From Haliotis rufescens (lineage: Eukaryota), in contig NW_025963813.1 in assembly GCF_023055435.1 (NCBI RefSeq), positions 3,782,001-3,846,000 on the forward strand: a DNA stretch of 64,000 bases. The letters are read 5' to 3'. The notes under the pieces are model-generated. The model searched no databases. It saw nothing but the letters and a program-made list of their open reading frames with translations, and was not told where the DNA came from. Shown piece by piece: positions 32,781 through 64,000 of this stretch (position 1 is its first letter; each line of letters opens with the position of its first letter). Position numbers and translations under genes: made by a program.

Positions 32781-33988
32781 TACAAATGAACAAGGAAATC
32801 AGGACACTATGAATCGAAATACTCCCAATGGAGAAAGAAAGAGAACAAGTTCTATTTTGACTTTTTCCTCAACATGTATTTGTAAACTAACACCAGATTA
32901 TATATCACCTTAGCATTCGAGAGTTTCATTCTTTATTATTTACATCTTCCTGAATAACCATCAAAACATGCTATGAAATTTATCTGAGAAGCGTAGGGAT
33001 ACAAGAGGGCTACAGTCTGAAAGCAGAATATGAGACCGCTCCATGTCACACATCTGAGTTGCTTTGTTCAAAGCAGTTAAATGAAACCTAGACAATTAAT
33101 TCAACTATTGTAGTCTGCATGTTTAAAATATTTCTTTGAGCTCTTTCCACACGATCGAAATCGCGTACCAATATATGCTGACCGCAGTAACCTGTAAGGG
33201 GCATACTATCTCCATCTGACTCAGCAATACAGTAAACTAAATGTAATGTCAACGGTATTACATTTAAGAAGGAGTCCTAAATGACATCCTATTATGGTGT
33301 GCGGATAGTGTATCAATGCAGTTAGCAAACTGATAGTCAAATGGACAGGTGTGAAGTTAACTAGGTATGGTATGTTGCTACTTTAATACTATTGTAATTT
33401 TCCACAAGGTCAGAACTGCTAAAATGCAGAAACGCCTAAACGTGGACAAGAACAAGGTATTTGTGAAGCATTTGGGGACGATTATGTAGGGTTGAAACTT
33501 CTTTAAATCTTGAGACAAAACGTATTAGAGGGGAAGAGTTCTGTTTTTGACGCATACACAGTGAAGACAAAATGTTGAAATACATTAAAAGTAAAATGTT
33601 CTCATAGGATAGATATAAAGGTATTTTGCAATTATCAACGGAATCTGTTGAGCTAATTCTAGGGACGATGTGTATGATTTCACTAGTGGAAACTGATATA
33701 TACCATGTATTTATAAATTGGCTTTCCGACAACACAGTCAAGGCAAGGAGTGAATTATTTGCAATGTTTAATTGTAAATTACCTTTTGTATTGGAGGATT
33801 CATATGCCAAGAATGGGACTAAAACTAGCTCTCGCTGCAGCTGTTTTTGTAATCAATAGGATACGGTTCTCCGTATGTGCGTTTGTATTGTACATCATGT
33901 ACCACATAGGTGATATGTGTTTCTACTTTTAATTTGCAGGTAAGCAGTAAGTAAATACAAAGTCGAAAAGACATATTCATTTCATGGT

Positions 33989-33994
33989 TTTATT
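33989..33994 (-). terminator. Polyadenylation signal AATAAA of copy 1 (present in every unit)
   Basis: tttatt on the plus strand, ~113 nt downstream of the stop codon. Confidence 0.75.
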
Positions 33995-34106
33995 TGAAGT
34001 CGTTTCTCAAAGTTGACATTGTATAGTGTGGTGTAGTCAACGATTCTATGGCAACGATGGCATCAAATGTCCAGCATTTGATAGAAATGTGAAGAGCCTG
34101 TTGAGT

Positions 34107-34708
34107 TTAACCATGGTGGCCACCGCCTCCATGGCCACCTCCTCCATGGCCGCCGCCACCGTGACCACCTCCGTGGCCGCCACCTCCATGTCCGCCGCCA
34201 CCATGACCCCCACCACCTTTGCCGCCTCCTCCGTGGCCGCCACCCCCTTTGCCACCGCCTCCTTTTCCGCCACCTCCTCCGTGGCCGCCACCTCCTTTGC
34301 CACCGCCTCCTTTGCCACCACCTCCTTTGCCACCGCCTCCTTTGCCACCGCCTCCTTTGCCACCACCTCCTTTTCCACCGCCTCCATGTCCTCCTCCGCC
34401 TCCTTTGCCGCCACCCCCTCCGTGGCCACCATAGGCAGAGCCAAAGAAGGCTGTGAACACTAGAAAGGAGAACAGTGCATCTGTAGTTAAATGTCTTTAA
34501 AGAACAACGCAAGAATATAGTTTTCAACCTCATAATGTTGCCAATTACCTTTTGTACGCTCTTTAAGTCACGTTGCTGTAGAAAATAGGCAATGAATTAA
34601 AAGATAAGTGAATTTATCAGTCCACATTTCAATAGAACTCACACAGCTCACGTTTGAAAGTTTGAACTTACCCAAGGCCACAACGAGTGCAATTTTATAG
34701 AGCTGCAT
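34107..34708 (-). CDS. Secreted Gly/Lys/His-rich protein, copy 1 (129 aa; exons 34672-34708 and 34107-34459)
   Basis: ATG CAG CTC TAT AAA ATT GCA CTC GTT GTG GCC TTG G|GTAAGT...TTCTCCTTTCTAG|TG TTC ACA GCC. The phase-1 splice restores the signal peptide MQLYKIALVVALVFTAFFGSAYG in frame with the Gly repeats. Confidence 0.92.
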
Positions 34709-34747
34709 CTTCACAGTTACGTCTATCCACAGTAGAATAAACGGTGT

Positions 34748-34783
34748 GAATGACCATGTAGCAAATACACAAGGCCTTTTATA
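34748..34783 (-). promoter_or_regulatory. Core promoter of copy 1: TATAAAAG (34776-34783) and Inr TCATTC (34748-34753); present in every unit
   Basis: The TATA box lies ~32 nt upstream of the Inr adenine (34751), which is 43 nt upstream of the ATG. Confidence 0.8.
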
Positions 34784-36528
34784 CAAATGGATAAGGAAAT
34801 CAGGACACTATGAATCGAAATACTCCCAATGGAGAAAGAAAGAGAACAAGTTCTATTTTGACTTTTTCCTCAACATGTATTTGTAAACTAACACCAGATT
34901 ATATAATATCACCTTGGCATTGGAGAGTTTCATTCTTTATTATTTACGTCTTCCTGAATAACCATCAAAACATGCTGTGCATTTGTTACGTAAGGCGGCG
35001 CCCCTTGGATGTTTCTCTGTTGGATTAAATGCAAGGTGCACTGACTCATCCAATGAATTCAAAGCAAATATGACATACAAAAACAATGAATAGACAGATC
35101 TCTATAAAATGCAAGAACAATGAGTAGCTGTAAATATCATGTTACTATAGGTCTCGTTATGCAGTTTCTTGGTCCCATCAATGACTATTGTAAAATACCT
35201 ATATCTGAAATGAGCAAACAGTAGATACTGCATGCTTTTCATTTGATGAAAATACACCGATATTTAGGGAATTACAACACGTACTACGCCTCCATCGCCT
35301 TATATGCTGCTCGTAGCACCACAACACATACTGTAAGTAATATCTACTCAATAATGGACACAGAAGTGACCGTGCAGCCACTTATACACGAGATATTTAC
35401 ACCTATCTGAGAAGCGTAGGGATACAAGAGGGCTACAGTCTGAAAGCAGAATATGAGACCGCTCCATGTCACACATCTGAGTTGCTTTTTTCAAAGCAGT
35501 TAAAAGAACCTAGATAATTAATTCAACTATTGTAGTCTGCATGTTTAAAATATTTCTTTGAGCTCTTTCCACACGATCGAAATCGCGTACCAATATATGC
35601 TGACCGCAGTAACCTGTAAGGGGCATACTATCTCCATCTGACTCAGCAATACAGTAAACTAAATGTAATGTCAACGGTATTACATTTAAGAAGAAGTGCT
35701 AAATGACATCCTATTATGGTGTGCGGATAGTGTATCAATGCAGTTAGCAAACTGATAGTCAAATGGACAGGTGTGAAGTTAACTAGGTATGGTATGTTGC
35801 TACTTTAATACTATTGTAATTCTCCACAAGGTCAGAACTGCTAAAATGCAGAAACGCCTAAACGTGGACAAGAACAAGGTAGATGTGAAGCATTTGGGGA
35901 CGATTATGTAGGGTTGAAAATTCTTTAAATCTTGAGACAAAACGTATTAGAGGGGAAGAGTTCTGTTTTTGACGCATACACAGTGAAGACAAAATGTTAA
36001 AATACATTAAAAGTAAAATGTACTCATAGGATAGATATAAAGGTATTTTGCAATTATCAACGGAATCTGTTGAGCTAATTCTAGGGACGATGTGTATGAT
36101 TTCACTAGTGGAAACTGATATATACCATGTATTTATAAATTGGCTTTCCGACAACACAGTCAACGCAAGGAGTGAATTATTTGCAATGTTTAATTGTAAA
36201 TTACCTTTTGTATTGGAGGATTCATATGCCAAGAATGGGACTAAAACTAGCTCTCGCTGCAGCTGTTTTTGTAATCAATAGGATACGGTTCTCCGTATGT
36301 GCGTTTGTATTGTACATCATGTACCACATAGGTGATATGTGTTTCTTCTTTTAATTTGCAGGTAAGCAGTAAGTAAATACAAAGTCGAAAAGACATATTC
36401 ATTTCATGGTTTTATTTGAAGTCGTTTCTCAAAGTTGACATTGTATAGTGTGGTGTAGTCAACGAGGCTATGGCAACGATGGCATCAAATGTCCAGCATT
36501 TGATAGAAATGTGAAGAGCCTGTTGAGT

Positions 36529-37193
36529 TTAACCATGGTGGCCACCGCCTCCATGGCCACCTCCTCCATGGCCGCCGCCACCGTGACCACCTCCGTGGCC
36601 ACCACCACCGTGGCCGCCGCCGCCGCCACCATGACCACCTCCGTGGCCGCCACCTCCATGTCCGCCGCCACCATGACCCCCACCACCTTTGCCGCCTCCT
36701 CCGTGGCCGCCACCCCCTTTGCCACCGCCTCCTTTTCCGCCACCTCCTCCGTGGCCGCCACCTCCTTTGCCACCGCCTCCTTTGCCACCACCTCCTTTGC
36801 CACCGCCTCCTTTGCCACCGCCTCCTTTGCCACCGCCTCCTTTGCCACCACCTCCTTTTCCACCGCCTCCATGTCCTCCTCCGCCTCCTTTGCCGCCACC
36901 CCCTCCGTGGCCACCATAGGCAGAGCCAAAGAAGGCTGTGAACACTAGAAAGGAGAACAGTGCATCTGTAGTTAAATGTCTTTAAAGAACAACGCAAGAA
37001 TATAGTTTTCAACCTCATAATGTTGCCAATTACCTTTTGTACGCTCTTTAAGTCACGTTGCTGTAGAAAATAGGCAATGAATTAAAAGATAAGTGAATTT
37101 ATCAGTCCACATTTCAATAGAACTCACACAGCTCACGTTTGAAAGTTTGAACTTACCCAAGGCCACAACGAGTGCAATTTTATAGAGCTGCAT
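36529..37193 (-). CDS. Secreted Gly/Lys/His-rich protein, copy 2 (150 aa; exons 37157-37193 and 36529-36944)
   Basis: Same exon/intron structure; intact frame. Confidence 0.92.
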
Positions 37194-38315: not shown

Positions 38316-38917
38316 TTAACCATGGTGGCCACCGCCTCCATGGCCACCTCCTCCATGGCCGCCGCCACCGTGACCACCTCCGTGGCCACCACCACCGTGG
38401 CCGCCGCCGCCGCCACCATGACCACCTCCGTGGCCGCCACCTCCATGTCCGCCGCCACCATGACCCCCACCACCTTTGCCGCCTCCTCCGTGGCCGCCAC
38501 CCCCTTTGCCACCGCCTCCTTTTCCACCACCTCCTTTGCCACCGCCTCCTTTGCCACCGCCTCCTTTGCCACCACCTCCTTTTCCACCGCCTCCATGTCC
38601 TCCTCCGCCTCCTTTGCCGCCACCCCCTCCGTGGCCACCATAGGCAGAGCCAAAGAAGGCTGTGAACACTAGAAAGGAGAACAGTGCATCTGTAGTTAAA
38701 TGTCTTTAAAGAACAACGCAAGAATATAGTTTTCAACCTCATAATGTTGCCAATTACCTTTTGTACGCTCTTTAAGTCACGTTGCTGTAGAAAATAGGCA
38801 ATGAATTAAAAGATAAGTGAATTTATCAGTCCACATTTCAATAGAACTCACACAGTTCACGTTTGAAAGTTTGAACTTACCCAAGGCCTCAACGAGTGCA
38901 ATTTTATAGAGCTGCAT
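38316..38917 (-). CDS. Secreted Gly/Lys/His-rich protein, copy 3 (129 aa; exons 38881-38917 and 38316-38668); Val10Glu in the signal peptide
   Basis: Same structure; ccaaggcctc at 38881 gives KIALVEALV. Confidence 0.88.
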
Positions 38918-40033: not shown

Positions 40034-40650
40034 TTAACCATGGTGGCCACCGCCTCCATGGCCACCTCCTCCATGGCCGCCGCCACCGTGACCACCTCCG
40101 TGGCCACCACCACCGTGGCCGCCGCCGCCGCCACCATGACCACCTCCGTGGCCGCCACCTCCATGTCCGCCGCCACCATGACCCCCACCACCTTTGCCGC
40201 CTCCTCCGTGGCCGCCACCCCCTTTGCCACCGCCTCCTTTTCGACCACCTCCTTTGCCACCGCCTCCTTTACCACCGCCTCCTTTGCCACCGCCTCCTTT
40301 GCCACCACCTCCTTTTCCACCGCCTCCATGTCCTCCTCCGCCTCCTTTGCCGCCACCCCCTCCGTGGCCACCATAGGCAGAGCCAAAGAAGGCTGTGAAC
40401 ACTAGAAAGGAGAACAGTGCATCTGTAGTTAAATGTCTTTAAAGAACAACGCAAGAATATAGTTTTCAACCTCATAATGTTGCCAATTACCTTTTGTACG
40501 CTTTTTAAGTCACGTTGCTGTAGAAAATAGGCAATGAATTAAAAGATAAGTGAATTTATCAGTCCACATTTCAATAGAACTCACACAGCTCACGTTTGAA
40601 AGTTTGAACTTACCCAAGGCCACAACGAGTGCAATTTTATAGAGCTGCAT
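40034..40650 (-). CDS. Secreted Gly/Lys/His-rich protein, copy 4 (134 aa; exons 40614-40650 and 40034-40401)
   Basis: Same structure; one Gly>Arg change (GGGRK). Confidence 0.92.
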
Positions 40651-42469: not shown

Positions 42470-43086
42470 TTAACTATGGTGGCCACCGCCTCCATGGCCA
42501 CCTCCTCCATGGCCGCCGCCACCGTGACCACCTCCGTGGCCACCACCACCGTGGCCGCCGCCGCCGCCACCATGACCACCTCCGTGGCCGCCACCTCCAT
42601 GTCCGCCGCCACCATGACCCCCACCACCTTTGCCGCCTCCTCCGTGGCCGCCACCTCCTTTGCCACCGCCTCCTTTGCCACCACCTCCTTTGCCACCGCC
42701 TCCTTTGCCACCGCCTCCTTTGCCACCGCCTCCTTTGCCACCACCTCCTTTTCCACCGCCTCCATGTCCTCCTCCGCCTCCTTTGCCGCCACCCCCTCCG
42801 TGGCCACCATAGGCAGAGCCAAAGAAGGCTGTGAACACTAGAAAGGAGAACAGTGCATCTGTAGTTAAATGTCTTTAAAGAACAACGCAAGAATATAGTT
42901 TTCAACCTCATAATGTTGCCAATTACCTTTTGTACGCTCTTTAAGTCACGTTGCTGTAGAAAATAGGCAATGAATTAAAAGATAAGTGAATTTATCAGTC
43001 CACATTTCAATAGAACTCACACAGTTCACGTTTGAAAGTTTGAACTTACCCAAGGCCACAACGAGTGCAATTTTATAGAGCTGCAT
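42470..43086 (-). CDS. Secreted Gly/Lys/His-rich protein, copy 5 (134 aa; exons 43050-43086 and 42470-42837); ends HHS
   Basis: Same structure; intact frame. Confidence 0.92.
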
Positions 43087-44910: not shown

Positions 44911-45605
44911 TTAACCATGGTGGCCACCGCCTCCATGGCCACCTCCTCCATGGCCGCCGCCACCGTGACCACCTCCGTGGCCACCACCACCGTGGCCGCC
45001 GCCGCCGCCACCATGACCACCTCCGTGGCCGCCACCTCCATGTCCGCCGCCACCATGACCCCCACCACCTTTGCCGCCTCCTCCGTGGCCGCCACCCCCT
45101 TTGCCACCGCCTCCTTTTCCGCCACCTCCTCCGTGGCCGCCACCTCCTTTGCCACCGCCTCCTTTGCCACCACCTCCTTTGCCACCGCCTCCTTTGCCAC
45201 CACCTCCTTTGCCACCGCCTCCTTTGCCACCGCCTCCTTTGCCACCGCCTCCTTTGCCACCACCTCCTTTTCCACCGCCTCCATGTCCTCCTCCGCCTCC
45301 TTTGCCGCCACCCCCTCCGTGGCCACCATAGGCAGAGCCAAAGAAGGCTGTGAACACTAGAAAGGAGAACAGTGCATCTGTAGTTAAATGTCTTTAAAGA
45401 ACAACGCAAGAATATAGTTTTCAACCTCATAATGTTGCCAATTACCTTTTGTACGCTCTTTAAGTCACGTTGCTGTAGAAAATAGGCAATGAATTAAAAG
45501 ATAAGTGAATTTATCAGTCCACATTTCAATAGAACTCACACAGTTCACGTTTGAAAGTTTGAACTTACCCAAGGCCACAACGAGTGCAATTTTATAGAGC
45601 TGCAT
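44911..45605 (-). CDS. Secreted Gly/Lys/His-rich protein, copy 6 (160 aa; exons 45569-45605 and 44911-45356)
   Basis: Same structure; longest GGGGK run. Confidence 0.92.
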
Positions 45606-47428: not shown

Positions 47429-48093
47429 TTAACTATGGTGGCCACCGCCTCCATGGCCACCTCCTCCATGGCCGCCGCCACCGTGACCACCTCCGTGGCC
47501 ACCACCACCGTGGCCGCCGCCGCCGCCACCATGACCACCTCCGTGGCCGCCAACTCCATGTCCGCCGCCACCATGACCCCCACCACCTTTGCCGCCTCCT
47601 CCGTGGCCGCCACCCCCTTTGCCACCGCCTCCTTTTCCGCCACCTCCTCCGTGGCCGCCACCTCCTTTGCCACCGCCTCCTTTGCCACCACCTCCTTTGC
47701 CACCGCCTCCTTTGCCACCGCCTCCTTTGCCACCGCCTCCTTTGCCACCACCTCCTTTTCCACCGCCTCCATGTCCTCCTCCGCCTCCTTTGCCGCCACC
47801 CCCTCCGTGGCCACCATAGGCAGAGCCAAAGAAGGCTGTGAACACTAGAAAGGAGAACAGTGCATCTGTAGTTAAATGTCTTTAAAGAACAACGCAAGAA
47901 TATAGTTTTCAACCTCATAATGTTGCCAATTACCTTTTGTACGCTCTTTAAGTCACGTTGCTGTAGAAAATAGGCAATGAATTAAAAGATAAGTGAATTT
48001 ATCAGTCCACATTTCAATAGAACTCACACAGTTCACGTTTGAAAGTTTGAACTTACCCAAGGCCACAACGAGTGCAATTTTATAGAGCTGCAT
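47429..48093 (-). CDS. Secreted Gly/Lys/His-rich protein, copy 7 (150 aa; exons 48057-48093 and 47429-47844); Gly>Val, ends HHS
   Basis: Same structure; intact frame. Confidence 0.92.
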
Positions 48094-49916
48094 CTTCACA
48101 GTTACGTCTATCCACAGTAGAATAAACGGTGTGAATGACCATGTAGCAAATACACAAGGCCTTTTATACAAATGGATAAGGAAATCAGGACACTATGAAT
48201 CGAAATACTCCCAATGGAGAAAGAAAGAGAACAAGTTCTATTTTGACTTTTTCCTCAACATGTATTTGTAAACTAACACCAGATTATATAATATCACCTT
48301 GGCATTGGAGAGTTTCATTCTTTATTATTTACGTCTTCCTGAATAACCATCAAAACATGCTGTGCATTTGTTACGTAAGGCGGCGCCCCTTGGATGTTTC
48401 TCTGTTGGATTAAATGCAAGGTGCACTGACTCATCCAATGAATTCAAAGCAAATATGACATACAAAAACAATGAATAGACGGGTCTCTATAAAATGCAAG
48501 AACAATGATTAGCTGTAAATATCATGTTACAATAGGTCTCGTTATGCAGTTTCTTGGTCCCATCAATGACTATTGTAAAATACCTATATCTGAAATGAGC
48601 AAACAGTAGATACTGCATGCTTTTCATTTGATGAAAATACACCGATATTTAGGGAATTACAACACGTACTACGCCTCCGTCGCCTTATATGCTGCTCGTA
48701 GCACCACAACACATACTGTAAGTAATATCTACTCAATAATGGACACAGAAGTGACCGTGCAACCACTTATACAGGAAATATATTTACACCTATCTGAGAA
48801 GCGTAGGGATAAAAGAGGGCTACAGTCTGAAAGCAGAATATGAGACCGCTCCATGTCACACATCTGAGTTGCTTTTTTCAAAGCAGTTAAAAGAACCTAG
48901 ATAATTAATTCAACTATTGTAGTCTGCATGTTTAAAATATTTCTTTGAGCTCTTTCCACACGATCGAAATCGCGTACCAATATATGCTGACCGCAGTAAC
49001 CTGTAAGGGGCATACTATCTCCATCTGACTCAGCAATACAGTAAACTAAATGTAATGTCAACGGTATTACATTTGAGAAAGAGTGCTAAATGACATCCTA
49101 TTATTGTGTGCGGATAGTGTATCAATGCAGTTAGCAAACTGATAGTCAAATGGACAGGTGTGAAGTTAACTAGGTATGGTATGTAGCTACTTTAATACTA
49201 TTGTACTTCTCCACAAGGTCAGAACTGCTAAAATGCAGAAACGCCTAAACGTGGACAAGAACAAGGTATTTGTGAAGCATTTGGGGACGATTATGTAGGG
49301 TTGAAACTTCTTTAAATCTTGAGACAAAACGTATTAGAGGGGAAGAGTTCTGTTTTTGACGCATACACAGTGAAGACAAAATGTTGAAATACATTAAAAG
49401 TAAAATGTACTCATAGGATAGATATATAGGTATTTTGCAATTATCAACGGAATCTGTTGAGCTAATTCTAGGGACGATGTGTATGATTTCACTAGTGGAA
49501 ACTGATATATACCATGTATTTATAAATTGGCTTTCCGACAACACAGTCAAGGCAAGGAGTGAATTATTTGCAATGTTTAATTGTTAATTACCTTTTGTAT
49601 TAGGAGGATTCATATGCCAAGAATGGGACTAACACTAGCTCTCGCTGCAGCTGTTTTTGTAATCAATAGGATACGGTTCTCCGTATGTGCGTTTGTATTA
49701 TACATCATGTACCACATAGGTGATATGTGTTTCTTCTTTTAATTTGCAGGTAAGCAGTAAGTAAATACAAAGTCGAAAAGACAAATTCATTTCATGGTTT
49801 TATTTGAAGTCGTTTCTCAAAGTTGACATTGTATAGTGTGGTGTAGTCAACGATTCTATGGCAACGATGGCATCAAATGTCCAGCATTTGATAGAAATGT
49901 GAAGAGCCTGTTGAGT

Positions 49917-50581
49917 TTAACCATGGTGGCCACCGCCTCCATGGCCACCTCCTCCATGGCCGCCGCCACCGTGACCACCTCCGTGGCCACCACCACCGTG
50001 GCCGCCGCCGCCGCCACCATGACCACCTCCGTGGCCGCCACCTCCATGTCCGCCGCCACCATGACCCCCACCACCTTTGCCGCCTCCTCCGTGGCCGCCA
50101 CCCCCTTTGCCACCGCCTCCTTTTCCGCCACCTCCTCCGTGGCCGCCACCTCCTTTGCCACCGCCTCCTTTGCCACCACCTCCTTTGCCACCGCCTCCTT
50201 TGCCACCGCCTCCTTTGCCACCGCCTCCTTTGCCACCACCTCCTTTTCCACCGCCTCCATGTCCTCCTCCGCCTCCTTTGCCGCCACCCCCTCCGTGGCC
50301 ACCATAGGCAGAGCCAAAGAAGGCTGTGAACACTAGAAAGGAGAACAGTGCATCTGTAGTTAAATGTCTTTAAAGAACAACGCAAGAATATAGTTTTCAA
50401 CCTCATAATGTTGCCAATTACCTTTTGTACGCTCTTTAAGTCACGTTGCTGTAGAAAATAGGCAATGAATTAAAAGATAAGTGAATTTATCAGTCCACAT
50501 TTCAATAGAACTCACACAGTTCACGTTTGAAAGTTTGAACTTACCCAAGGCCACAACGAGTGCAATTTTATAGAGCTGCAT
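49917..50581 (-). CDS. Secreted Gly/Lys/His-rich protein, copy 8 (150 aa; exons 50545-50581 and 49917-50332)
   Basis: Same structure; intact frame. Confidence 0.92.
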
Positions 50582-52404
50582 CTTCACAGTTACGTCTATC
50601 CACAGTAGAATAAACGGTGTGAATGACCACGTAGCAAATACACAAGGCCTTTTATACAAATGGATAAGGAAATCAGGACACTATGAATCGAAATACTCCC
50701 AATGGAGAAAGAAAGAGAACAAGTTCTATTTTGACTTTTTCCTCAACATGTATTTGTAAACTAACACCAGATTATATAATATCACCTTGGCATTGGAGAG
50801 TTTCATTCTTTATTATTTACGTCTTCCTGAATAACCATCAAAACATGCTGTGCATTTGTTACGTAAGGCGGCGCCCCTTGGATGTTTCTCTGTTGGATTA
50901 AATGCAAGGTGCACTGACTCATCCAATGAATTCAAAGCAAATATGACATACAAAAACAATGAATAGACGGGTCTCTATAAAATGCAAGAACAATGATTAG
51001 CTGTAAATATCATGTTACAATAGGTCTCGTTATGCAGTTTCTTGGTCCCATCAATGACTATTGTAAAATACCTATATCTGAAATGAGCAAACAGTAGATA
51101 CTGCATGCTTTTCATTTGATGAAAATACACCGATATTTAGGGAATTACAACACGTACTATGCCTCCGTCGCCTTATATGCTGCTCGTAGCACCACAACAC
51201 ATACTGTAAGTGATATCTACTCAATAATGGACACAGAAGTGACCGTGCAACCACTTATACACGAAATATATTTACACCTATCTGAGAAGCGTAGGGATAA
51301 AAGAGGGCTACAGTCTGAAAGCAGAATATGAGACCGCTCCATGTCACACATCTGAGTTGCTTTTTTCAAAGCAGTTAAAAGAACCTAGATAATTAATTCA
51401 ACTATTGTAGTCTGCATGTTTAAAATATTTCTTTGAGCTCTTTCCACACGATCGAAATCGCGTACCAATATATGCTGACCGCAGTAACCTGTAAGGGGCA
51501 TACTATCTCCATCTGACTCAGCAATACAGTAAACTAAATGTAATGTCAACGGTATTACATTTGAGAAAGAGTGCTAAATGACATCCTATTATTGTGTGCG
51601 GATAGTGTATCAATGCAGTTAGCAAACTGATAGTCAAATGGACAGGTGTGAAGTTAACTAGGTATGGTATGTAGCTACTTTAATACTATTGTAATTCTCC
51701 ACAAGGTCAGAACTGCTAAAATGCAGAAACGCCTAAACGTGGACAAGAACAAGGTATTTGTGAAGCATTTGGGGACGATTATGTAGGGTTGAAACTTCTT
51801 TAAATCTTGAGACAAAACGTATTAGAGGGGAAGAGTTCTGTTTTTGACGCATACACAGTGAAGACAAAATGTTGAAATACATTAAAAGTAAAATGTACTC
51901 ATAGGATAGATATATAGGTATTTTGCAATTATCAACGGAATCTGTTGAGCTAATTCTAGGGACGATGTGTATGATTTCACTAGTGGAAACTGATATATAC
52001 CATGTATTTATAAATTGGCTTTCCGACAACACAGTCAAGGCAAGGAGTGAATTATTTGCAATGTTTAATTGTTAATTACCTTTTGTATTAGGAGGATTCA
52101 TATGCCAACAATGGGACTAACACTAGCTCTCGCTGCAGCTGTTTTTGTAATCAATAGGATACGGTTCTCCGTATGTGCGTTTGTATTATACATCATGTAC
52201 CACATAGGTGATATGTGTTTCTTCTTTTAATTTGCAGGTAAGCAGTAAGTAAATACAAAGTCGAAAAGACAAATTCATTTCATGGTTTTATTTGAAGTCG
52301 TTTCTCAAAGTTGACATTGTATAGTGTGGTGTAGTCAACGATTCTATGGCAACGATGGCATCAAATGTCCAGCATTTGATAGAAATGTGAAGAGCCTGTT
52401 GAGT

Positions 52405-53069
52405 TTAACCATGGTGGCCACCGCCTCCATGGCCACCTCCTCCATGGCCGCCGCCACCGTGACCACCTCCGTGGCCACCACCACCGTGGCCGCCGCCGCC
52501 GCCACCATGACCACCTCCGTGGCCGCCACCTCCATGTCCGCCGCCACCATGACCCCCACCACCTTTGCCGCCTCCTCCGTGGCCGCCACCCCCTTTGCCA
52601 CCGCCTCCTTTTCCGCCACCTCCTCCGTGGCCGCCACCTCCTTTGCCACCGCCTCCTTTGCCACCACCTCCTTTGCCACCGCCTCCTTTGCCACCGCCTC
52701 CTTTGCCACCGCCTCCTTTGCCACCACCTCCTTTTCCACCGCCTCCATGTCCTCCTCCGCCTCCTTTGCCGCCACCCCCTCCGTGGCCACCATAGGCAGA
52801 GCCAAAGAAGGCTGTGAACACTAGAAAGGAGAACAGTGCATCTGTAGTTAAATGTCTTTAAAGAACAACGCAAGAATATAGTTTTCAACCTCATAATGTT
52901 GCCAATTACCTTTTGTACGCTCTTTAAGTCACGTTGCTGTAGAAAATAGGCAATGAATTAAAAGATAAGTGAATTTATCAGTCCACATTTCAATAGAACT
53001 CACACAGTTCACGTTTGAAAGTTTGAACTTACCCAAGGCCACAACGAGTGCAATTTTATAGAGCTGCAT
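52405..53069 (-). CDS. Secreted Gly/Lys/His-rich protein, copy 9 (150 aa; exons 53033-53069 and 52405-52820)
   Basis: Same structure; intact frame. Confidence 0.92.
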
Positions 53070-54892
53070 CTTCACAGTTACGTCTATCCACAGTAGAATA
53101 AACGGTGTGAATGACCACGTAGCAAATACACAAGGCCTTTTATACAAATGGATAAGGAAATCAGGACACTATGAATCGAAATACTCCCAATGGAGAAAGA
53201 AAGAGAACAAGTTCTATTTTGACTTTTTCCTCAACATGTATTTGTAAACTAACACCAGATTATATAATATCACCTTGGCATTGGAGAGTTTCATTCTTTA
53301 TTATTTACGTCTTCCTGAATAACCATCAAAACATGCTGTGCATTTGTTACGTAAGGCGGCGCCCCTTGGATGTTTCTCTGTTGGATTAAATGCAAGGTGC
53401 ACTGACTCATCCAATGAATTCAAAGCAAATATGACATACAAAAACAATGAATAGACGGGTCTCTATAAAATGCAAGGACAATGATTAGCTGTAAATATCA
53501 TGTTACAATAGGTCTCGTTATGCAGTTTCTTGGTCCCATCAATGACTATTGTAAAATACCTATATCTTAAATGAGCAAACAGTAGATACTGCATGCTTTT
53601 CATTTGATGAAAATACACCGATATTTAGGGAATTACAACACGTACTACGCCTCCGTCGCCTTATATGCTGCTCGTAGCACCACAACACATACTGTAAGTG
53701 ATATCTACTCAATAATGGACACAGAAGTGACCGTGCAACCACTTATACAGGAAATATATTTACACCTATCTGAGAAGCGTAGGGATAAAAGAGGGCTACA
53801 GTCTGAAAGCAGAATATGAGACCGCTCCATGTCACACATCTGAGTTGCTTTTTTCAAAGCAGTTAAAAGAACCTAGATAATTAATTCAACTATTGTAGTC
53901 TGCATGTTTAAAATATTTCTTTGAGCTCTTTCCACACGATCGAAATCGCGTACCAATATATGCTGACCGCAGTAACCTGTAAGGGGCATACTATCTCCAT
54001 CTGACTCAGCAATACAGTAAACTAAATGTAATGTCAACGGTATTACATTTGAGAAAGAGTGCTAAATGACATCCTATTATTGTGTGCGGATAGTGTATCA
54101 ATGCAGTTAGCAAACTGATAGTCAAATGGACAGGTGTGAAGTTAACTAGGTATGGTATGTAGCTACTTTAATACTATTGTAATTCTCCACAAGGTCAGAA
54201 CTGCTAAAATGCAGAAACGCCTAAACGTGGACAAGAACAAGGTATTTGTGAAGCATTTGGGGACGATTATGTAGGGTTGAAACTTCTTTAAATCTTGAGA
54301 CAAAACGTATTAGAGGGGAAGAGTTCTGTTTTTGACGCATACACAGTGAAGACAAAATGTTGAAATACATTAAAAGTAAAATGTACTCATAGGATAGATA
54401 TATAGGTATTTTGCAATTATCAACGGAATCTGTTGAGCTAATTCTAGGGACGATGTGTATGATTTCACTAGTGGAAACTGATATATACCATGTATTTATA
54501 AATTGGCTTTCCGACAACACAGTCAAGGCAAGGAGTGAATTATTTGCAATGTTTAATTGTTAATTACCTTTTGTATTAGGAGGATTCATATGCCAACAAT
54601 GGGACTAACACTAGCTCTCGCTGCAGCTGTTTTTGTAATCAATAGGATACGGTTCTCCGTATGTGCGTTTGTATTATACATCATGTACCACATAGGTGAT
54701 ATGTGTTTCTTCTTTTAATTTGCAGGTAAGCAGTAAGTAAATACAAAGTCGAAACGACAAATTCATTTCATGGTTTTATTTGAAGTCGTTTCTCAAAGTT
54801 GACATTGTATAGTGTGGTGTAGTCAACGATTCTATGGCAACGATGGCATCAAATGTCCAGCATTTGATAGAAATGTGAAGAGCCTGTTGAGT

Positions 54893-55542
54893 TTAACCAT
54901 GGTGGCCACCGCCTCCATGGCCACCTCCTCCATGGCCGCCGCCACCGTGACCACCTCCGTGGCCACCACCACCGTGGCCGCCGCCGCCGCCACCATGACC
55001 ACCTCCGTGGCCGCCACCTCCATGTCCGCCGCCACCATGACCCCCACCACCTTTGCCGCCTCCTCCGTGGCCGCCACCCCCTTTGCCACCGCCTCCTTTT
55101 CCGCCACCTCCTCCGTGGCCGCCACCTCCTTTGCCACCGCCTCCTTTGCCACCACCTCCTTTGCCACCGCCTCCTTTGCCACCGCCTCCTTTGCCACCAC
55201 CTCCTTTTCCACCGCCTCCATGTCCTCCTCCGCCTCCTTTGCCGCCACCCCCTCCGTGGCCACCATAGGCAGAGCCAAAGAAGGCTGTGAACACTAGAAA
55301 GGAGAACAGTGCATCTGTAGTTAAATGTCTTTAAAGAACAACGCAAGAATATAGTTTTCAACCTCATACTGTTGCCAATTACCTTTTGTACGCTCTTTAA
55401 GTCACGTTGCTGTAGAAAATAGGCAATGAATTAAAAGATAAGTGAATTTATCAGTCCACATTTCAATAGAACTCACACAGCTCACGTTTGAAAGTTTGAA
55501 CTTACCCAAGGCCACAACGAGTGCAATTTTATAGAGCTGCAT
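54893..55542 (-). CDS. Secreted Gly/Lys/His-rich protein, copy 10 (145 aa; exons 55506-55542 and 54893-55293)
   Basis: Same structure; intact frame. Confidence 0.92.
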
Positions 55543-57365
55543 CTTCACAGTTACGTCTATCCACGGTAGAATAAACGGTGTGAATGACCATGTAGCAAAT
55601 ACACAAGGCCTTTTATACAAATGGATAAGGAAATCAGGACACTATGAATCGAAATACTCCCAATGGAGAAAGAAAGAGAACAAGTTCTATTTTGACTTTT
55701 TCCTCAACATGTATTTGTAAACTAACACCAGATTATATAATATCACCTTGGCATTGGAGAGTTTCATTCTTTATTATTTACGTCTTCCTGAATAACCATC
55801 AAAACATGCTGTGCATTTGTTACGTAAGGCGGCGCCCCTTGGATGTTTTTCTGTTGGATTAAATGCAAGGTGCACTGACTCATCCAATGAATTCAAAGCA
55901 AATATGACATACAAAAACAATGAATAGACGGGTCTCTATAAAATGCAAGAACAATGATTAGCTGTAAATATCATGTTACAATAGGTCTCGTTATGCAGTT
56001 TCTTGGTCCCATCAATGACTATTGTAAAATACCTATATCTTAAATGAGCAAACAGTAGATACTGCATGCTTTTCATTTGATGAAAATACACCGATATTTA
56101 GGGAATTACAACACGTACTACGCCTCCGTCGCCTTATATGCTGCTCGTAGCACCACAACACATACTGTAAGTGATATCTACTCAATAATGGACACAGAAG
56201 TGACCGTGCAACCACTTATACAGGAAATATATTTACACCTATCTGAGAAGCGTAGGGATAAAAGAGGGCTACAGTCTGAAAGCAGAATATGAGACCGCTC
56301 CATGTCACACATCTGAGTTGCTTTTTTCAAAGCAGTTAAAAGAACCTAGATAATTAATTCAACTATTGTAGTCTGCATGTTTAAAATATTTCTTTGAGCT
56401 CTTTCCACACGATCGAAATCGCGTACCAATATATGCTGACCGCAGTAACCTGTAAGGGGCATACTATCTCCATCTGACTCAGCAATACAGTAAACTAAAT
56501 GTAATGTCAACGGTATTACATTTGAGAAAGAGTGCTAAATGACATCCTATTATTGTGTGCGGATAGTGTATCAATGCAGTTAGCAAACTGATAGTCAAAT
56601 GGACAGGTGTGAAGTTAACTAGGTATGGTATGTAGCTACTTTAATACTATTGTAATTCTCCACAAGGTCAGAACTGCTAAAATGCAGAAACGCCTAAACG
56701 TGGACAAGAACAAGGTATTTATGAAGCATTTGGGGACGATTATGTAGGGTTGAAACTTCTTTAAATCTTGAGACAAAACGTATTAGAGGGGAAGAGTTCT
56801 GTTTTTGACGCATACACAGTGAAGACAAAATGTTGAAATACATTAAAAGTAAAATGTACTCATAGGATAGATATATAGGTATTTTGCAATTATCAACGGA
56901 ATCTGTTGAGCTAATTCTAGGGACGATGTGTATGATTTCACTAGTGGAAACTGATATATACCATGTATTTATAAATTGGCTTTCCGACAACACAGTCAAG
57001 GCAAGGAGTGAATTATTTGCAATGTTTAATTGTTAATTACCTTTTGTATTAGGAGGATTCATATGCCAAGAATGGGACTAACACTAGCTCTCGCTGCAGC
57101 TGTTTTTGTAATCAATAGGATACGGTTCTCCGTATGTGCGTTTGTATTATACATCATGTACCACATAGGTGATATGTGTTTCTTCTTTTAATTTGCAGGT
57201 AAGCAGTAAGTAAATACAAAGTCGAAAAGACAAATTCATTTCATGGTTTTATTTGAAGTCGTTTCTCAAAGTTGACATTGTATAGTGTGGTGTAGTCAAC
57301 GATTCTATGGCAACGATGGCATCAAATGTCCAGCATTTGATAGAAATGTGAAGAGCCTGTTGAGT

Positions 57366-58030
57366 TTAACCATGGTGGCCACCGCCTCCATGGCCACCTC
57401 CTCCATGGCCGCCGCCACCGTGACCACCTCCGTGGCCACCACCACCGTGGCCGCCGCCGCCGCCACCATGACCACCTCCGTGGCCGCCACCTCCATGTCC
57501 GCCGCCACCATGACCCCCACCACCTTTGCCGCCTCCTCCGTGGCCGCCACCCCCTTTGCCACCGCCTCCTTTTCCGCCACCTCCTCCGTGGCCGCCACCT
57601 CCTTTGCCACCGCCTCCTTTGCCACCACCTCCTTTGCCACCGCCTCCTTTGCCACCGCCTCCTTTGCCACCGCCTCCTTTGCCACCACCTCCTTTTCCAC
57701 CGCCTCCATGTCCTCCTCCGCCTCCTTTGCCGCCACCCCCTCCGTGGCCACCATAGGCAGAGCCAAAGAAGGCTGTGAACACTAGAAAGGAGAACAGTGC
57801 ATCTGTAGTTAAATGTCTTTAAAGAACAACGCAAGAATATAGTTTTCAACCTCATAATGTTGCCAATTACCTTTTGTACGCTCTTTAAGTCACGTTGCTG
57901 TAGAAAATAGGCAATGAATTAAAAGATAAGTGAATTTATCAGTCCACATTTCAATAGAACTCACACAGTTCACGTTTGAAAGTTTGAACTTACCCAAGGC
58001 CACAACGAGTGCAATTTTATAGAGCTGCAT
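57366..58030 (-). CDS. Secreted Gly/Lys/His-rich protein, copy 11 (150 aa; exons 57994-58030 and 57366-57781)
   Basis: Same structure; intact frame. Confidence 0.92.
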
Positions 58031-59853
58031 CTTCACAGTTACGTCTATCCACAGTAGAATAAACGGTGTGAATGACCACGTAGCAAATACACAAGGCCTT
58101 TTATACAAATGGATAAGGAAATCAGGACACTATGAATCGAAATACTCCCAATGGAGAAAGAAAGAGAACAAGTTCTATTTTGACTTTTTCCTCAACATGT
58201 ATTTGTAAACTAACACCAGATTATATAATATCACCTTGGCATTGGAGAGTTTCATTCTTTATTATTTACGTCTTCCTGAATAACCATCAAAACATGCTGT
58301 GCATTTGTTACGTAAGGCGGCGCCCCTTGGATGTTTCTCTGTTGGATTAAATGCAAGGTGCACTGACTCATCCAATGAATTCAAAGCAAATATGACATAC
58401 AAAAACAATGAATAGACGGGTCTCTATAAAATGCAAGGACAATGATTAGCTGTAAATATCATGTTACAATAGGTCTCGTTATGCAGTTTCTTGGTCCCAT
58501 CAATGACTATTGTAAAATACCTATATCTTAAATGAGCAAACAGTAGATACTGCATGCTTTTCATTTGATGAAAATACACCGATATTTAGGGAATTACAAC
58601 ACGTACTACGCCTCCGTCGCCTTATATGCTGCTCGTAGCACCACAACACATACTGTAAGTAATATCTACTCAATAATGGACACAGAAGTGACCGTGCAAC
58701 CACTTATACAGGAAATATATTTACACCTATCTGAGAAGCGTAGGGATAAAAGAGGGCTACAGTCTGAAAGCAGAATATGAGACCGCTCCATGTCACACAT
58801 CTGAGTTGCTTTTTTCAAAGCAGTTAAAAGAACCTAGATAATTAATTCAACTATTGTAGTCTGCATGTTTAAAATATTTCTTTGAGCTCTTTCCACACGA
58901 TCGAAATCGCGTACCAATATATGCTGACCGCAGTAACCTGTAAGGGGCATACTATCTCCATCTGACTCAGCAATACAGTAAACTAAATGTAATGTCAACG
59001 GTATTACATTTGAGAAAGAGTGCTAAATGACATCCTATTATTGTGTGCGGATAGTGTATCAATGCAGTTAGCAAACTGATAGTCAAATGGACAGGTGTGA
59101 AGTTAACTAGGTATGGTATGTAGCTACTTTAATACTATTGTACTTCTCCACAAGGTCAGAACTGCTAAAATGCAGAAACGCCTAAACGTGGACAAGAACA
59201 AGGTATTTGTGAAGCATTTGGGGACGATTATGTAGGGTTGAAACTTCTTTAAATCTTGAGACAAAACGTATTAGAGGGGAAGAGTTCTGTTTTTGACGCA
59301 TACACAGTGAAGACAAAATGTTGAAATACATTAAAAGTAAAATGTACTCATAGGATAGATATATAGGTATTTTGCAATTATCAACGGAATCTGTTGAGCT
59401 AATTCTAGGGACGATGTGTATGATTTCACTAGTGGAAACTGATATATACCATGTATTTATAAATTGGCTTTCCGACAACACAGTCAAGGCAAGGAGTGAA
59501 TTATTTGCAATGTTTAATTGTTAATTACCTTTTGTATTAGGAGGATTCATATGCCAAGAATGGGACTAACACTAGCTCTCGCTGCAGCTGTTTTTGTAAT
59601 CAATAGGATACGGTTCTCCGTATGTGCGTTTGTATTATACATCATGTACCACATAGGTGATATGTGTTTCTTCTTTTAATTTGCAGGTAAGCAGTAAGTA
59701 AATACAAAGTCGAAAAGACAAATTCATTTCATGGTTTTATTTGAAGTCGTTTCTCAAAGTTGACATTGTATAGTGTGGTGTAGTCAACGATTCTATGGCA
59801 ACGATGGCATCAAATGTCCAGCATTTGATAGAAATGTGAAGAGCCTGTTGAGT

Positions 59854-60503
59854 TTAACCATGGTGGCCACCGCCTCCATGGCCACCTCCTCCATGGCCGC
59901 CGCCACCGTGACCACCTGCGTGGCCACCACCACCGTGGCCGCCGCCGCCGCCACCATGACCACCTCCGTGGCCGCCACCTCCATGTCCGCCGCCACCATG
60001 ACCCCCACCACCTTTGCCGCCTCCTCCGTGGCCGCCACCCCCTTTGCCACCGCCTCCTTTTCCGCCACCTCCTCCGTGGCCGCCACCTCCTTTGCCACCG
60101 CCTCCTTTGCCACCACCTCCTTTGCCACCGCCTCCTTTGCCACCGCCTCCTTTGCCACCACCTCCTTTTCCACCGCCTCCATGTCCTCCTCCGCCTCCTT
60201 TGCCGCCACCCCCTCCGTGGCCACCATAGGCAGAGCCAAAGAAGGCTGTGAACACTAGAAAGGAGAACAGTGCATCTGTAGTTAAATGTCTTTAAAGAAC
60301 AACGCAAGAATATAGTTTTCAACCTCATAATGTTGCCAATTACCTTTTGTACGCTCTTTAAGTCACGTTGCTGTAGAAAATAGGCAATGAATTAAAAGAT
60401 AAGTGAATTTATCAGTCCACATTTCAATAGAACTCACACAGTTCACGTTTGAAAGTTTGAACTTACCCAAGGCCACAACGAGTGCAATTTTATAGAGCTG
60501 CAT
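59854..60503 (-). CDS. Secreted Gly/Lys/His-rich protein, copy 12 (145 aa; exons 60467-60503 and 59854-60254); one Gly>Ala
   Basis: Same structure; intact frame. Confidence 0.92.
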
Positions 60504-62326
60504 CTTCACAGTTACGTCTATCCACAGTAGAATAAACGGTGTGAATGACCACGTAGCAAATACACAAGGCCTTTTATACAAATGGATAAGGAAATCAGGA
60601 CACTATGAATCGAAATACTCCCAATGGAGAAAGAAAGAGAACAAGTTCTATTTTGACTTTTTCCTCAACATGTATTTGTAAACTAACACCAGATTATATA
60701 ATATCACCTTGGCATTGGAGAGTTTCATTCTTTATTATTTACGTCTTCCTGAATAACCATCAAAACATGCTGTGCATTTGTTACGTAAGGCGGCGCCCCT
60801 TGGATGTTTCTCTGTTGGATTAAATGCAAGGTGCACTGACTCATCCAATGAATTCAAAGCAAATATGACATACAAAAACAATGAATAGACGGGTCTCTAT
60901 AAAATGCAAGAACAATGATTAGCTGTAAATATCATGTTACAATAGGTCTCGTTATGCAGTTTCTTGGTCCCATCAATGACTATTGTAAAATACCTATATC
61001 TGAAATGAGCAAACAGTAGATACTGCATGCTTTTCATTTGATGAAAATACACCGATATTTAGGGAATTACAACACGTACTACGCCTCCGTCGCCTTATAT
61101 GCTGCTCGTAGCACCACAACACATACTGTAAGTGATATCTACTCAATAATGGACACAGAAGTGACCGTGCAACCACTTATACACGAAATATATTTACACC
61201 TATCTGAGAAGCGTAGGGATAAAAGAGGGCTACAGTCTGAAAGCAGAATATGAGACCGCTCCATGTCACACATCTGAGTTGCTTTTTTCAAAGCAGTTAA
61301 AAGAACCTAGATAATTAATTCAACTATTGTAGTCTGCATGTTTAAAATATTTCTTTGAGCTCTTTCCACACGATCGAAATCGCGTACCAATATATGCTGA
61401 CCGCAGTAACCTGTAAGGGGCATACTATCTCCATCTGACTCAGCAATACAGTAAACTAAATGTAATGTCAACGGTATTACATTTGAGAAAGAGTGCTAAA
61501 TGACATCCTATTATTGTGTGCGGATAGTGTATCAATGCAGTTAGCAAACTGATAGTCAAATGGACAGGTGTGAAGTTAACTAGGTATGGTATGTAGCTAC
61601 TTTAATACTATTGTACTTCTCCACAAGGTCAGAACTGCTAAAATGCAGAAACGCCTAAACGTGGACAAGAACAAGGTATTTGTGAAGCATTTGGGGACGA
61701 TTATGTAGGGTTGAAACTTCTTTAAATCTTGAGACAAAACGTATTAGAGGGGAAGAGTTCTGTTTTTGACGCATACACAGTGAAGACAAAATGTTGAAAT
61801 ACATTAAAAGTAAAATGTACTCATAGGATAGATATATAGGTATTTTGCAATTATCAACGGAATCTGTTGAGCTAATTCTAGGGACGATGTGTATGATTTC
61901 ACTAGTGGAAACTGATATATACCATGTATTTATAAATTGGCTTTCCGACAACACAGTCAAGGCAAGGAGTGAATTATTTGCAATGTTTAATTGTTAATTA
62001 CCTTTTGTATTAGGAGGATTCATATGCCAAGAATGGGACTAACACTAGCTCTCGCTGCAGCTGTTTTTGTAATCAATAGGATACGGTTCTCCGTATGTGC
62101 GTTTGTATTATACATCATGTACCACATAGGTGATATGTGTTTCTTCTTTTAATTTGCAGGTAAGCAGTAAGTAAATACAAAGTCGAAAAGACAAATTCAT
62201 TTCATGGTTTTATTTGAAGTCGTTTCTCAAAGTTGACATTGTATAGTGTGGTGTAGTCAACGATTCTATGGCAACGATGGCATCAAATGTCCAGCATTTG
62301 ATAGAAATGTGAAGAGCCTGTTGAGT

Positions 62327-62991
62327 TTAACCATGGTGGCCACCGCCTCCATGGCCACCTCCTCCATGGCCGCCGCCACCGTGACCACCTCCGTGGCCAC
62401 CACCACCGTGGCCGCCGCCGCCGCCACCATGACCACCTCCGTGGCCGCCACCTCCATGTCCGCCGCCACCATGACCCCCACCACCTTTGCCGCCTCCTCC
62501 GTGGCCGCCACCCCCTTTGCCACCGCCTCCTTTTCCGCCACCTCCTCCGTGGCCGCCACCTCCTTTGCCACCGCCTCCTTTGCCACCACCTCCTTTGCCA
62601 CCGCCTCCTTTGCCACCGCCTCCTTTGCCACCGCCTCCTTTGCCACCACCTCCTTTTCCACCGCCTCCATGTCCTCCTCCGCCTCCTTTGCCGCCACCCC
62701 CTCCGTGGCCACCATAGGCAGAGCCAAAGAAGGCTGTGAACACTAGAAAGGAGAACAGTGCATCTGTAGTTAAATGTCTTTAAAGAACAACGCAAGAATA
62801 TAGTTTTCAACCTCATAATGTTGCCAATTACCTTTTGTACGCTCTTTAAGTCACGTTGCTGTAGAAAATAGGCAATGAATTAAAAGATAAGTGAATTTAT
62901 CAGTCCACATTTCAATAGAACTCACACAGCTCACGTTTGAAAGTTTGAACTTACCCAAGGCCACAACGAGTGCAATTTTATAGAGCTGCAT
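62327..62991 (-). CDS. Secreted Gly/Lys/His-rich protein, copy 13 (150 aa; exons 62955-62991 and 62327-62742)
   Basis: Same structure; intact frame. Confidence 0.92.
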
Positions 62992-64000
62992 CTTCACAGT
63001 TACGTCTATCCACAGTAGAATAAACGGTGTGAATGACCACGTAGCAAATACACAAGGCCTTTTATACAAATGGATAAGGAAATCAGGACACTATGAATCG
63101 AAATACTCCCAATGGAGAAAGAAAGAGAACAAGTTCTATTTTGACTTTTTCCTCAACATGTATTTGTAAACTAACACCAGATTATATAATATCACCTTGG
63201 CATTGGAGAGTTTCATTCTTTATTATTTACGTCTTCCTGAATAACCATCAAAACATGCTGTGCATTTGTTACGTAAGGCGGCGCCCCTTGGATGTTTCTC
63301 TGTTGGATTAAATGCAAGGTGCACTGACTCATCCAATGAATTCAAAGCAAATATGACATACAAAAACAATGAATAGACGGGTCTCTATAAAATGCAAGGA
63401 CAATGATTAGCTGTAAATATCATGTTACAATAGGTCTCGTTATGCAGTTTCTTGGTCCCATCAATGACTATTGTAAAATACCTATATCTTAAATGAGCAA
63501 ACAGTAGATACTGCATGCTTTTCATTTGATGAAAATACACCGATATTTAGGGAATTACAACACGTACTACGCCTCCGTCGCCTTATATGCTGCTCGTAGC
63601 ACCACAACACATACTGTAAGTGATATCTACTCAATAATGGACACAGAAGTGACCGTGCAACCACTTATACACGAAATATATTTACACCTATCTGAGAAGC
63701 GTAGGGATAAAAGAGGGCTACAGTCTGAAAGCAGAATATGAGACCGCTCCATGTCACACATCTGAGTTGCTTTTTTCAAAGCAGTTAAAAGAACCTAGAT
63801 AATTAATTCAACTATTGTAGTCTGCATGTTTAAAATATTTCTTTGAGCTCTTTCCACACGATCGAAATCGCGTACCAATATATGCTGACCGCAGTAACCT
63901 GTAAGGGGCATACTATCTCCATCTGACTCAGCAATACAGTAAACTAAATGTAATGTCAACGGTATTACATTTGAGAAAGAGTGCTAAATGACATCCTATT

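Follow-up and report, generated by a model that had tools for sequence, protein, structure and literature searches.

Anatomy of the gene array

The analysed window is a 64,000-nucleotide stretch of the genome of the abalone Haliotis rufescens (contig C35:3782001-3846000 of the 1.33-Gb assembly; 0 N in the window). From position 32781 to its end at 64000, the minus strand carries a tandem array of small genes, which are predicted to encode secreted polypeptides of almost only glycine (Gly), lysine (Lys) and histidine (His). Tandem Repeats Finder located Gly-coding repeats every ~2.5 kb from 34.1 kb to the window end, with the Gly codons on the minus strand. Copies of the first exon were located by a script and each was traced via the intron to the stop codon. 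Thirteen intact units lie head-to-tail in the window, and the array, array 1 in the following, runs past the window end. Its downstream edge is a truncated terminal unit at 32781..32972 (minus strand), identified by blastn of a full unit against the left flank. This remnant is a promoter fragment equivalent to positions -74 to -268 and contains no gene. An earlier reading of the window from its letters alone, the sequence-only reading, had placed the array edge at exactly this position.

The first gene illustrates the anatomy of all units. Its promoter (34709..35123) is the sole upstream stretch that is alignable with a second array described below. A TATAAAAG box at 34776..34783 lies 75 nucleotides (nt) 5′ of the ATG; it is present at -75 in all 26 genes of array 1. 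An initiator-like TCATTC at 34748-34753 is the putative start site, which would give a 5′ untranslated region (5′UTR) of ~43 nt. Coding exon 1 (34672..34708) has 37 nt, comprising the ATG, 11 codons and one further nucleotide, and codes for the N-region of the predicted signal peptide and the beginning of its hydrophobic core. A phase 1 intron of 212 nt follows (34460..34671; GTAAGT...TCTAG). The coding part of exon 2 (34107..34459) provides the remainder of the signal peptide, a chain of 106 Gly, Lys and His residues and the stop codon. The poly(A) signal AATAAA is located at 33989..33994, 113 nt past the stop as in all 26 genes of array 1. An inverted CCAAT box (35050-35054) stands beside TGAGTCA, an AP-1 consensus (35042-35048), ~340 nt 5′ of the ATG. 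Read by eye, both motifs occur at the same place in every unit; the second array keeps the CCAAT box and has TGATTCA as the second motif.

The other units repeat this design. The 37-nt first coding exon is identical in the 13 units save one substitution in one copy. The intron has exactly 212 nt in 13/13 units, with GT-AG borders, a GTAAGT donor and TCTAG at the acceptor end. Exon 2 is open over 116-147 codons. For each unit, the sequence-only reading had listed a TATA box, a coding exon of 37 nt, a GT-AG intron of 212 nt, a repeat exon and AATAAA; these elements were confirmed for all 13.

The genes differ in the length of the exon-2 product. Gene 1 has its ATG at 34708; the following coordinates run from stop to ATG, all on the minus strand. 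Gene 2 (36529..37193) has an exon-2 product of 137 amino acids (aa) with the major mature form of 127 residues. An exon-2 product of 137 aa is also encoded by gene 8 (49917..50581), gene 9 (52405..53069), gene 11 (57366..58030), gene 13 (62327..62991) and gene 7 (47429..48093), the last with one Val and a terminal Ser in the end HHS. Gene 10 (54893..55542) and gene 12 (59854..60503; one Ala) encode 132 aa, and gene 6 (44911..45605) the longest form of 147 aa. Shorter products are those of gene 5 (42470..43086; 121 aa, terminal Ser in the end HHS), gene 4 (40034..40650; 121 aa, one Arg) and gene 3 (38316..38917; 116 aa, with Glu in place of Val in the signal-peptide core). Each of 5 of the 13 copies thus has one or two odd residues, which is a correction to the sequence-only reading. 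Its count of 101 Gly, 15 His and 11 Lys, with no other residue, in the mature chain of 127 aa was exact.

Units are spaced by 2473-2519 bp, with the exception of two short units of 1724 bp (gene 3) and 1733 bp (gene 4), which are explained by a spacer deletion. Over part of the array (48093-62991), units of 2488 and 2473 bp with the 137- and 132-codon forms alternate, which suggests the amplification of a two-unit block. A search of three units against Rfam yielded no match, which argues against an RNA gene hidden in the spacer. Across the repeat, each of the six reading frames is open. Open frames alone therefore prove nothing, and the case for a gene rests on the comparison with the second array.

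Copies in the genome

Array 1 comprises 26 intact genes at C35:3816107-3877324. Array 2 is located on the same chromosome-scale contig and strand, 1.9 Mb off, and has 35 intact genes (C35:5746801-5825882) with a period of ~2292 bp. Two codon-degenerate patterns, one for the junction of signal peptide and mature chain and one for the end of exon 1 with the donor site, were searched for genome-wide. They matched at 60 and 61 sites, each within array 1 or array 2, and reversed controls gave 0 matches. Neither pattern revealed a family copy outside the two arrays. The at least 13 intact tandem genes of the sequence-only reading are 13 in the window, 26 in the full array 1 and 61 in the genome. All 61 are on the minus strand and 61/61 are intact, an intactness that is not due to chance.

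Within each array, the units are ~99.5% identical, spacers included. This deviation of ~0.5% compares with 16-47% between the arrays. Head-to-tail order on one strand, near-identity of the spacers and a divergence that is larger between than within arrays identify a concertedly evolving tandem multigene array.

The arrays also differ in details. Array 2 is the older one and encodes shorter, Lys-richer chains (71-92 aa). One of its units has an insertion of ~650 bp, and the three most downstream copies begin with M-H, not M-Q. The upstream end of array 1 (C35:3878950-3879860) carries a 5′-truncated copy whose exon 2 abuts a transfer-RNA-like short interspersed nuclear element (SINE) of ~180 bp. 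The SINE is flanked by a duplicated fragment of the 3′ untranslated region (3′UTR), and a chimeric open reading frame (ORF) of 143 aa begins inside it. A remnant of a Tc1/mariner-type transposase with DDE_3 and HTH_38 domains lies ~5.5 kb beyond array 1 (L009:9019-9996).

Conservation between the arrays

Units within an array are not independent witnesses because they are ~99.5% identical; the two arrays are independent. Alignment between them is possible only in the stretch that begins at about -415 and stops shortly after the poly(A) signal. Identity between the arrays is 81% in exon 1 and 84% in exon 2. The intron has 53% and is unalignable, and the spacers have no match. Both arrays have kept the ATG with an A at -3 and the two splice sites (donor G|GTAAGT and acceptor), as well as the stop and AATAAA. 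The TATA-like element of array 2 is ATATAAG in place of the TATAAAAG of array 1.

The differences in exon 2 are unevenly distributed over the codon positions. Read in the Gly/Lys/His frame, 7, 3 and 38 differences are located at the first, second and third positions (38 of 48 at the third; Fisher p ~1e-12). The corrected distance is ~0.54 at third positions versus 0.05 at the others. The 23 codons of the signal peptide have six silent changes and four conservative hydrophobic replacements. Both arrays still encode a pure Gly/Lys/His chain. Because 38 of 48 differences are at third positions, the Gly/Lys/His frame is under purifying selection. Gly codon usage was compared with that of a haemocyanin gene and was uninformative.

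Exon 2 has no in-frame ATG. The selected frame can therefore be reached only from the ATG of exon 1 through the conserved GT-AG splice. This argues for splicing of exon 1 to exon 2 and for a two-exon gene model, which is deduced here from the conserved sequence.

Predicted polypeptide

The two exons together would encode a signal peptide of 23 residues. The piece in exon 1 consists of M-Q-L-Y-K and seven hydrophobic residues, and the codon split by the intron is Val. The piece in exon 2 continues with F-T-A-F-F and ends in G-S-A-Y-G, with Ala at -3 and Gly at -1. Read separately, the exon pieces have the features of a classical secretory signal peptide, and array 2 has the same design with conservative changes. 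Secretion is therefore the expected fate of the product. The basic N-region, hydrophobic core and A-Y-G site recognised in the sequence-only reading hold on this piecewise reading and are kept in array 2.

Mature chains of array 1 would have 106-137 residues and 7.7-10.0 kDa; the major form is ~80% Gly, 12% His and 9% Lys. Those of array 2 would have 71-92 residues and 5.2-6.6 kDa, with fewer His. The layout is the same in both arrays: a Gly-His start, GGGGK pentads, then GGGGH pentads and an HH-Gly end. The GGGGH pentads of array 2 alternate with K. Length variants differ mainly by whole pentads. The masses calculated for the major forms are 9,247 Da (array 1, 127 aa) and 6,373 Da (array 2, 88 aa); amidation at the terminal Gly would lower each by ~58 Da. 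For the major form of array 1, the calculated charge is +10 at pH 8.1 and +25 at pH 5. An AlphaFold2 model of the chain had a predicted local distance difference test score (pLDDT) of 44 and no secondary structure. The mature chain is predicted to be an intrinsically disordered polycation.

Every Lys is in a Gly-Lys-Gly context, which we take to be the minimal context of collagen lysyl hydroxylases; hydroxylation of this chain is hypothetical. The Gly-His start and the terminal Gly are conserved in both arrays. The terminal Gly might be an amidation donor and the start a copper site, as in Gly-His-Lys; both suggestions are weak ones.

The exon-2 product had no match in Pfam, and neither had the ORFs of the flanks and spacers. 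A search of a 5.8-billion-protein database scored 8000 candidates for the exon-2 product, with 0 at E <= 0.01. No match was obtained among PDB sequences and no usable match in the ESM Atlas. These negatives are weak evidence of novelty since composition correction and filters probably remove even true relatives. In the literature on Gly-rich or His-rich proteins of molluscs and abalone, no description of this protein was found. The earlier failure to recognise a named family agrees with these searches, within the same limit of composition filtering.

Transcription

Part of the gene is present in 14 transcriptome-sized sequencing runs from six studies with four species labels. DNA-sized runs hold ~0.8 of the gene's sequence words. 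Contigs of four small transcriptome-like runs, from four studies, were aligned to one unit of 2.4 kb. They are confined to 33987-34439, that is, exon 2 and the 3′UTR up to AATAAA, and end at 33987-34019 next to the poly(A) signal. None of the contigs in these four runs lies on the intron or the 1.7-kb spacer. Such a pattern is what mRNA gives and is unlike DNA. The contigs carry 45-48 extra bases in comparison to the short reference unit and hence agree with the longer copies, which are commoner. Transcription of exon 2 and the 3′UTR is seen in these transcriptome-like contigs.

Neighbouring sequences

Four satellite blocks are located just outside the array, at 13250-16791, 17133-19097, 19319-20425 and 23259-23702. 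Their periods are, in this order, 74, 31, 44 and 44 bp, with 48, 63, 25 and 10 copies. A strong C-over-G skew characterises the window at 17-20 kb. A repeat of 39 bp at 3229-3620 (10 copies, 97% identical) lies inside an open frame of 187 aa and gives it a period of 13 residues; this frame had no Pfam match. Elsewhere in the genome, three tandem haemocyanin genes of the mollusc type are located at C583:25.95-26.05 Mb. Each comprises eight functional units, most of which are a single long open frame. Exons of the Egg_lysin family are also present. Together, these genes mark the host as a vetigastropod, almost certainly an abalone.

Comparison with known genes and proteins

Several known systems resemble the abalone genes in part. 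Nearest by design are the Gly/His-rich antimicrobial peptides. Shepherins, holotricin-3 and tenecin-3, from a plant and from beetles, are active against microbes or fungi. They share with the predicted product a signal peptide, a dominance of Gly with regular His, little or no fixed structure and a charge that depends on pH and metals. Unlike the abalone chain, they contain Tyr, Gln, Pro and other residues, have no Lys block and are encoded by one or few genes, compared to 61 here. No sequence relationship to them was found in Pfam, the 5.8-billion-protein search, PDB and the ESM Atlas, searches that are weakened by composition filters. Peptides of the acanthoscurrin and ctenidin type have ~70% Gly interspersed with hydrophobic and aromatic residues such as Leu and Tyr, unlike the abalone mature chain, which has no hydrophobic or aromatic residue.

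Gly-rich polycations are also known as bulk secretions. The cement proteins Pc-1, -2, -4 and -5 of the sandcastle worm, which are polybasic and Gly/Lys/His-rich, and small mussel foot proteins are secreted in bulk and in many variants. These materials set when they pass from granule pH to seawater pH and pair with polyanions, and they depend on Tyr and 3,4-dihydroxyphenylalanine (DOPA). The abalone product would likewise be a small secreted Gly-rich polycation, but it has no Tyr or DOPA, and no homology to these proteins was found. In genomic organisation, the fish antifreeze protein genes and the early histone genes come close. They form arrays of tens of units, each 2-3 kb long and placed head-to-tail with one orientation, whose near-identity extends to the spacers; such arrays are usually read as a sign of demand for dosage. 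Their products are unrelated, and the abalone has two separately homogenised arrays with two length classes of one design.

The SpTransformer (Sp185/333) family of the sea urchin consists of ~50 small, tightly clustered two-exon genes with the hydrophobic leader in exon 1 and repeats in exon 2; its disordered protein is rich in Gly in the N-terminal region and in His nearer the C-terminus (PMC5491942). Each SpTrf gene is a different mosaic of diverse elements, and the proteins contain RGD and many other residues (PMC5491942). In contrast, the abalone copies are homogenised, have three residue types and no Arg-Gly-Asp, and an intron splits the signal peptide; no homology was found. Nvjp-1 from the jaw of Nereis virens is a disordered, Zn-hardened Gly/His-rich material protein that is secreted, and pH and Zn switch its assembly; the protein has 38 kDa and >25 mol% His, plus Tyr and acidic residues (PMC9465683). 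Abalone chains differ by their 5-10 kDa, 7-12% His and 9-14% Lys and have no Tyr, Asp or Glu; metal binding is here only hypothetical.

Molluscs themselves have small, basic, Gly-rich proteins with a signal peptide from lineage-restricted, tandemly duplicated genes, namely shematrins, KRMPs and 'silk-like structural proteins' (PMC4944945). Shematrins and KRMPs have XGnX repeats with Tyr and Leu, are expressed in the mantle and are documented in shell proteomes; the abalone mature chain contains neither residue. The consulted part of an abalone shell proteome study (PMC6003135) mentions no Gly/Lys/His-only protein. For each of the systems compared, at least one defining feature is absent from the abalone genes, which therefore belong to none of them.

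Function

Taken as a whole, the data are best explained by a selectively maintained and transcribed family of 61 genes for a secreted Gly/Lys/His polypeptide, with a bulk material as the preferred role. The probability of this explanation is roughly one half. The chances of the role itself are a little short of even: the chains would be a bulk constituent of some secreted material, for example mucus, an adhesive or a tanned matrix, periostracum-type or other. A TATA-driven two-exon gene would be present in each unit of ~2.3-2.5 kb, and splicing would link the repeat exon to the 37-nt exon. Each array is kept ~99.5% uniform through unequal exchange and gene conversion. This uniformity is the signature of amplification for dosage. 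The 61 homogenised copies point to a demand for dosage, not diversity. Dosage amplification was already proposed in the sequence-only reading, and the second array and the codon-position test have strengthened it.

The chemistry of the chain may suit such a material. On transfer from a granule-like pH 5 to seawater at pH 8.1, the charge would roughly halve, and the histidines would deprotonate and become free to bind metals. On a flexible Gly backbone, Lys and His may act as nucleophiles for cross-linking, as metal ligands or as charges that condense polyanions. The pH jump at secretion would then switch cross-linking or binding on. A more specific and tentative version, well short of an even chance, is a natural three-letter block co-polypeptide, a block of Lys pentads followed by a block of His pentads on a pure Gly backbone. 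Produced in bulk by the 61 homogenised genes, it would be a pH- and metal-switchable polycation that condenses or cross-links an abalone secretion. Conceivable examples are coacervation with sulfated mucus polymers and quinone tanning, in which the chain would supply the Lys/His nucleophiles for Gly/Tyr proteins that are amplified separately.

The same genome contains at least one other large homogenised array, which encodes a secreted protein with GGLYGG repeats (426 pattern matches, ~4.0-kb spacing). Bulk Gly-rich secreted proteins are hence a theme in this genome. The GGLYGG(M/V) repeats are located at C24:566-607 kb and 836-856+ kb. This array was considered as part of the same family and rejected: first exon and intron position are not common to both, and its signal peptide is unsplit and in the same exon as the repeats.

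Several points weigh against the material reading. The chain has no Tyr or DOPA, Cys or acidic residues and would not cross-link or mineralise alone. For a matrix protein, 5-10 kDa would be small, whereas this size is typical of Gly-rich antimicrobial peptides, and the present data do not separate material from defence. Copy numbers come from one assembly. The transcriptome-like runs are only guessed to be RNA, and their contigs give no strand, ends or level. In the four runs, no contig lies over the 5′UTR, exon 1 or the joint of exon 1 and exon 2; the transcripts expected by the sequence-only reading were therefore seen on exon 2 and the 3′UTR and not across the joint. The conserved Gly-His start and terminal Gly are weak evidence for processing since the chain is ~80% Gly.

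The strongest rival is a host-defence effector, a family of Gly/His-rich cationic antimicrobial or antifungal peptides. A mode of action by acid-charged or metal-bound His has been proposed for shepherins, holotricin-3 and tenecin-3. In the abalone, His charged at acid pH or bound Zn or Cu would drive binding to microbial surfaces, and the genes would be amplified for constitutive output at epithelia or in haemocytes. With 5-10 kDa, a signal peptide, ~80% Gly, 7-12% His and a charge of +10 to +25, the product lies within the range of known Gly-(His-)rich peptides. The layout of the SpTransformer immune family, with clustered two-exon genes and a Gly-rich and a His-rich region in a disordered protein (PMC5491942), also speaks for a defence role. 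Regulated or tissue-specific expression would fit one run with none of the sampled words beside two runs of the same study that contain them. Yet the chain has no hydrophobic or aromatic residue and thus no amphipathicity, and searches of Pfam, the protein database and the ESM Atlas revealed no homologous antimicrobial-peptide family. To our knowledge, 61 near-identical copies are without precedent at antimicrobial-peptide loci of invertebrates. Immune effector families usually diversify, whereas these copies are homogenised. A defence role is possible, with a probability clearly below one half.

Other explanations are far less probable. A precursor of small peptides, cut after each Lys into GGGGK-type pentapeptides and a His-rich tail, or releasing an N-terminal Gly-His copper peptide, would provide signals or metal carriers. 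The regular spacing of Lys and the Gly-His start and HH-Gly end of both arrays would agree with it. It is improbable nonetheless: dibasic convertase sites are absent, a single Lys in Gly context is no known prohormone site, a terminal Gly is expected by chance in a chain of 80% Gly, and the number of pentads varies freely among copies. A non-functional, satellite-like amplification of a dead or idle gene, with frames open because the copies are young, is disfavoured and still less probable. The ~99.5% identity including spacers does mean that intactness within one array says little, and all six frames are open. But intron and spacers have diverged to saturation, while promoter, ATG, splice sites, frame, stop and poly(A) signal were kept. 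Both arrays are pure Gly/Lys/His with changes concentrated at third positions, and transcripts occur in transcriptome-like runs of several studies and species labels. The least credible proposal is a product from another frame, either an Arg/Trp-rich one from an intronic ATG or an Ala/Val/Glu/Lys-rich one whose ATG lies in the Tyr-Gly codons. In array 1, both are open and begin with ATG or near-cognate codons. In array 2, however, the Arg/Trp frame has three stop codons, the substitutions between the arrays are at positions that are silent only in the Gly/Lys/His frame, and the intron with the alternative ATG is neither conserved nor covered by contigs. Alternative frames were rejected on the stops of array 2 and the codon-position pattern.

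Implications

If the Gly/Lys/His polypeptide is made as predicted, it would be among the simplest natural secreted polypeptides known, with two blocks and three types of residue. The pH step from granule to seawater would switch its charge and its affinity for metals. If the block co-polypeptide reading is true, biomaterial proteins would gain a new class whose minimal design can be copied directly. Materials science would obtain a minimal template for hydrogels, coacervates and coatings that are triggered by pH or metals.

Should the product be antimicrobial, it would be relevant to disease in farmed abalone. For genome biology, the family is a clean case of dosage amplification and concerted evolution in a mollusc, since one gene has two arrays that were homogenised independently and the genome holds other Gly-rich arrays as well. 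For mollusc biology, the product would be an abundant one that is probably hidden from annotation by low-complexity filters. Proteomics probably misses it too; trypsin would release mostly GGGGK.

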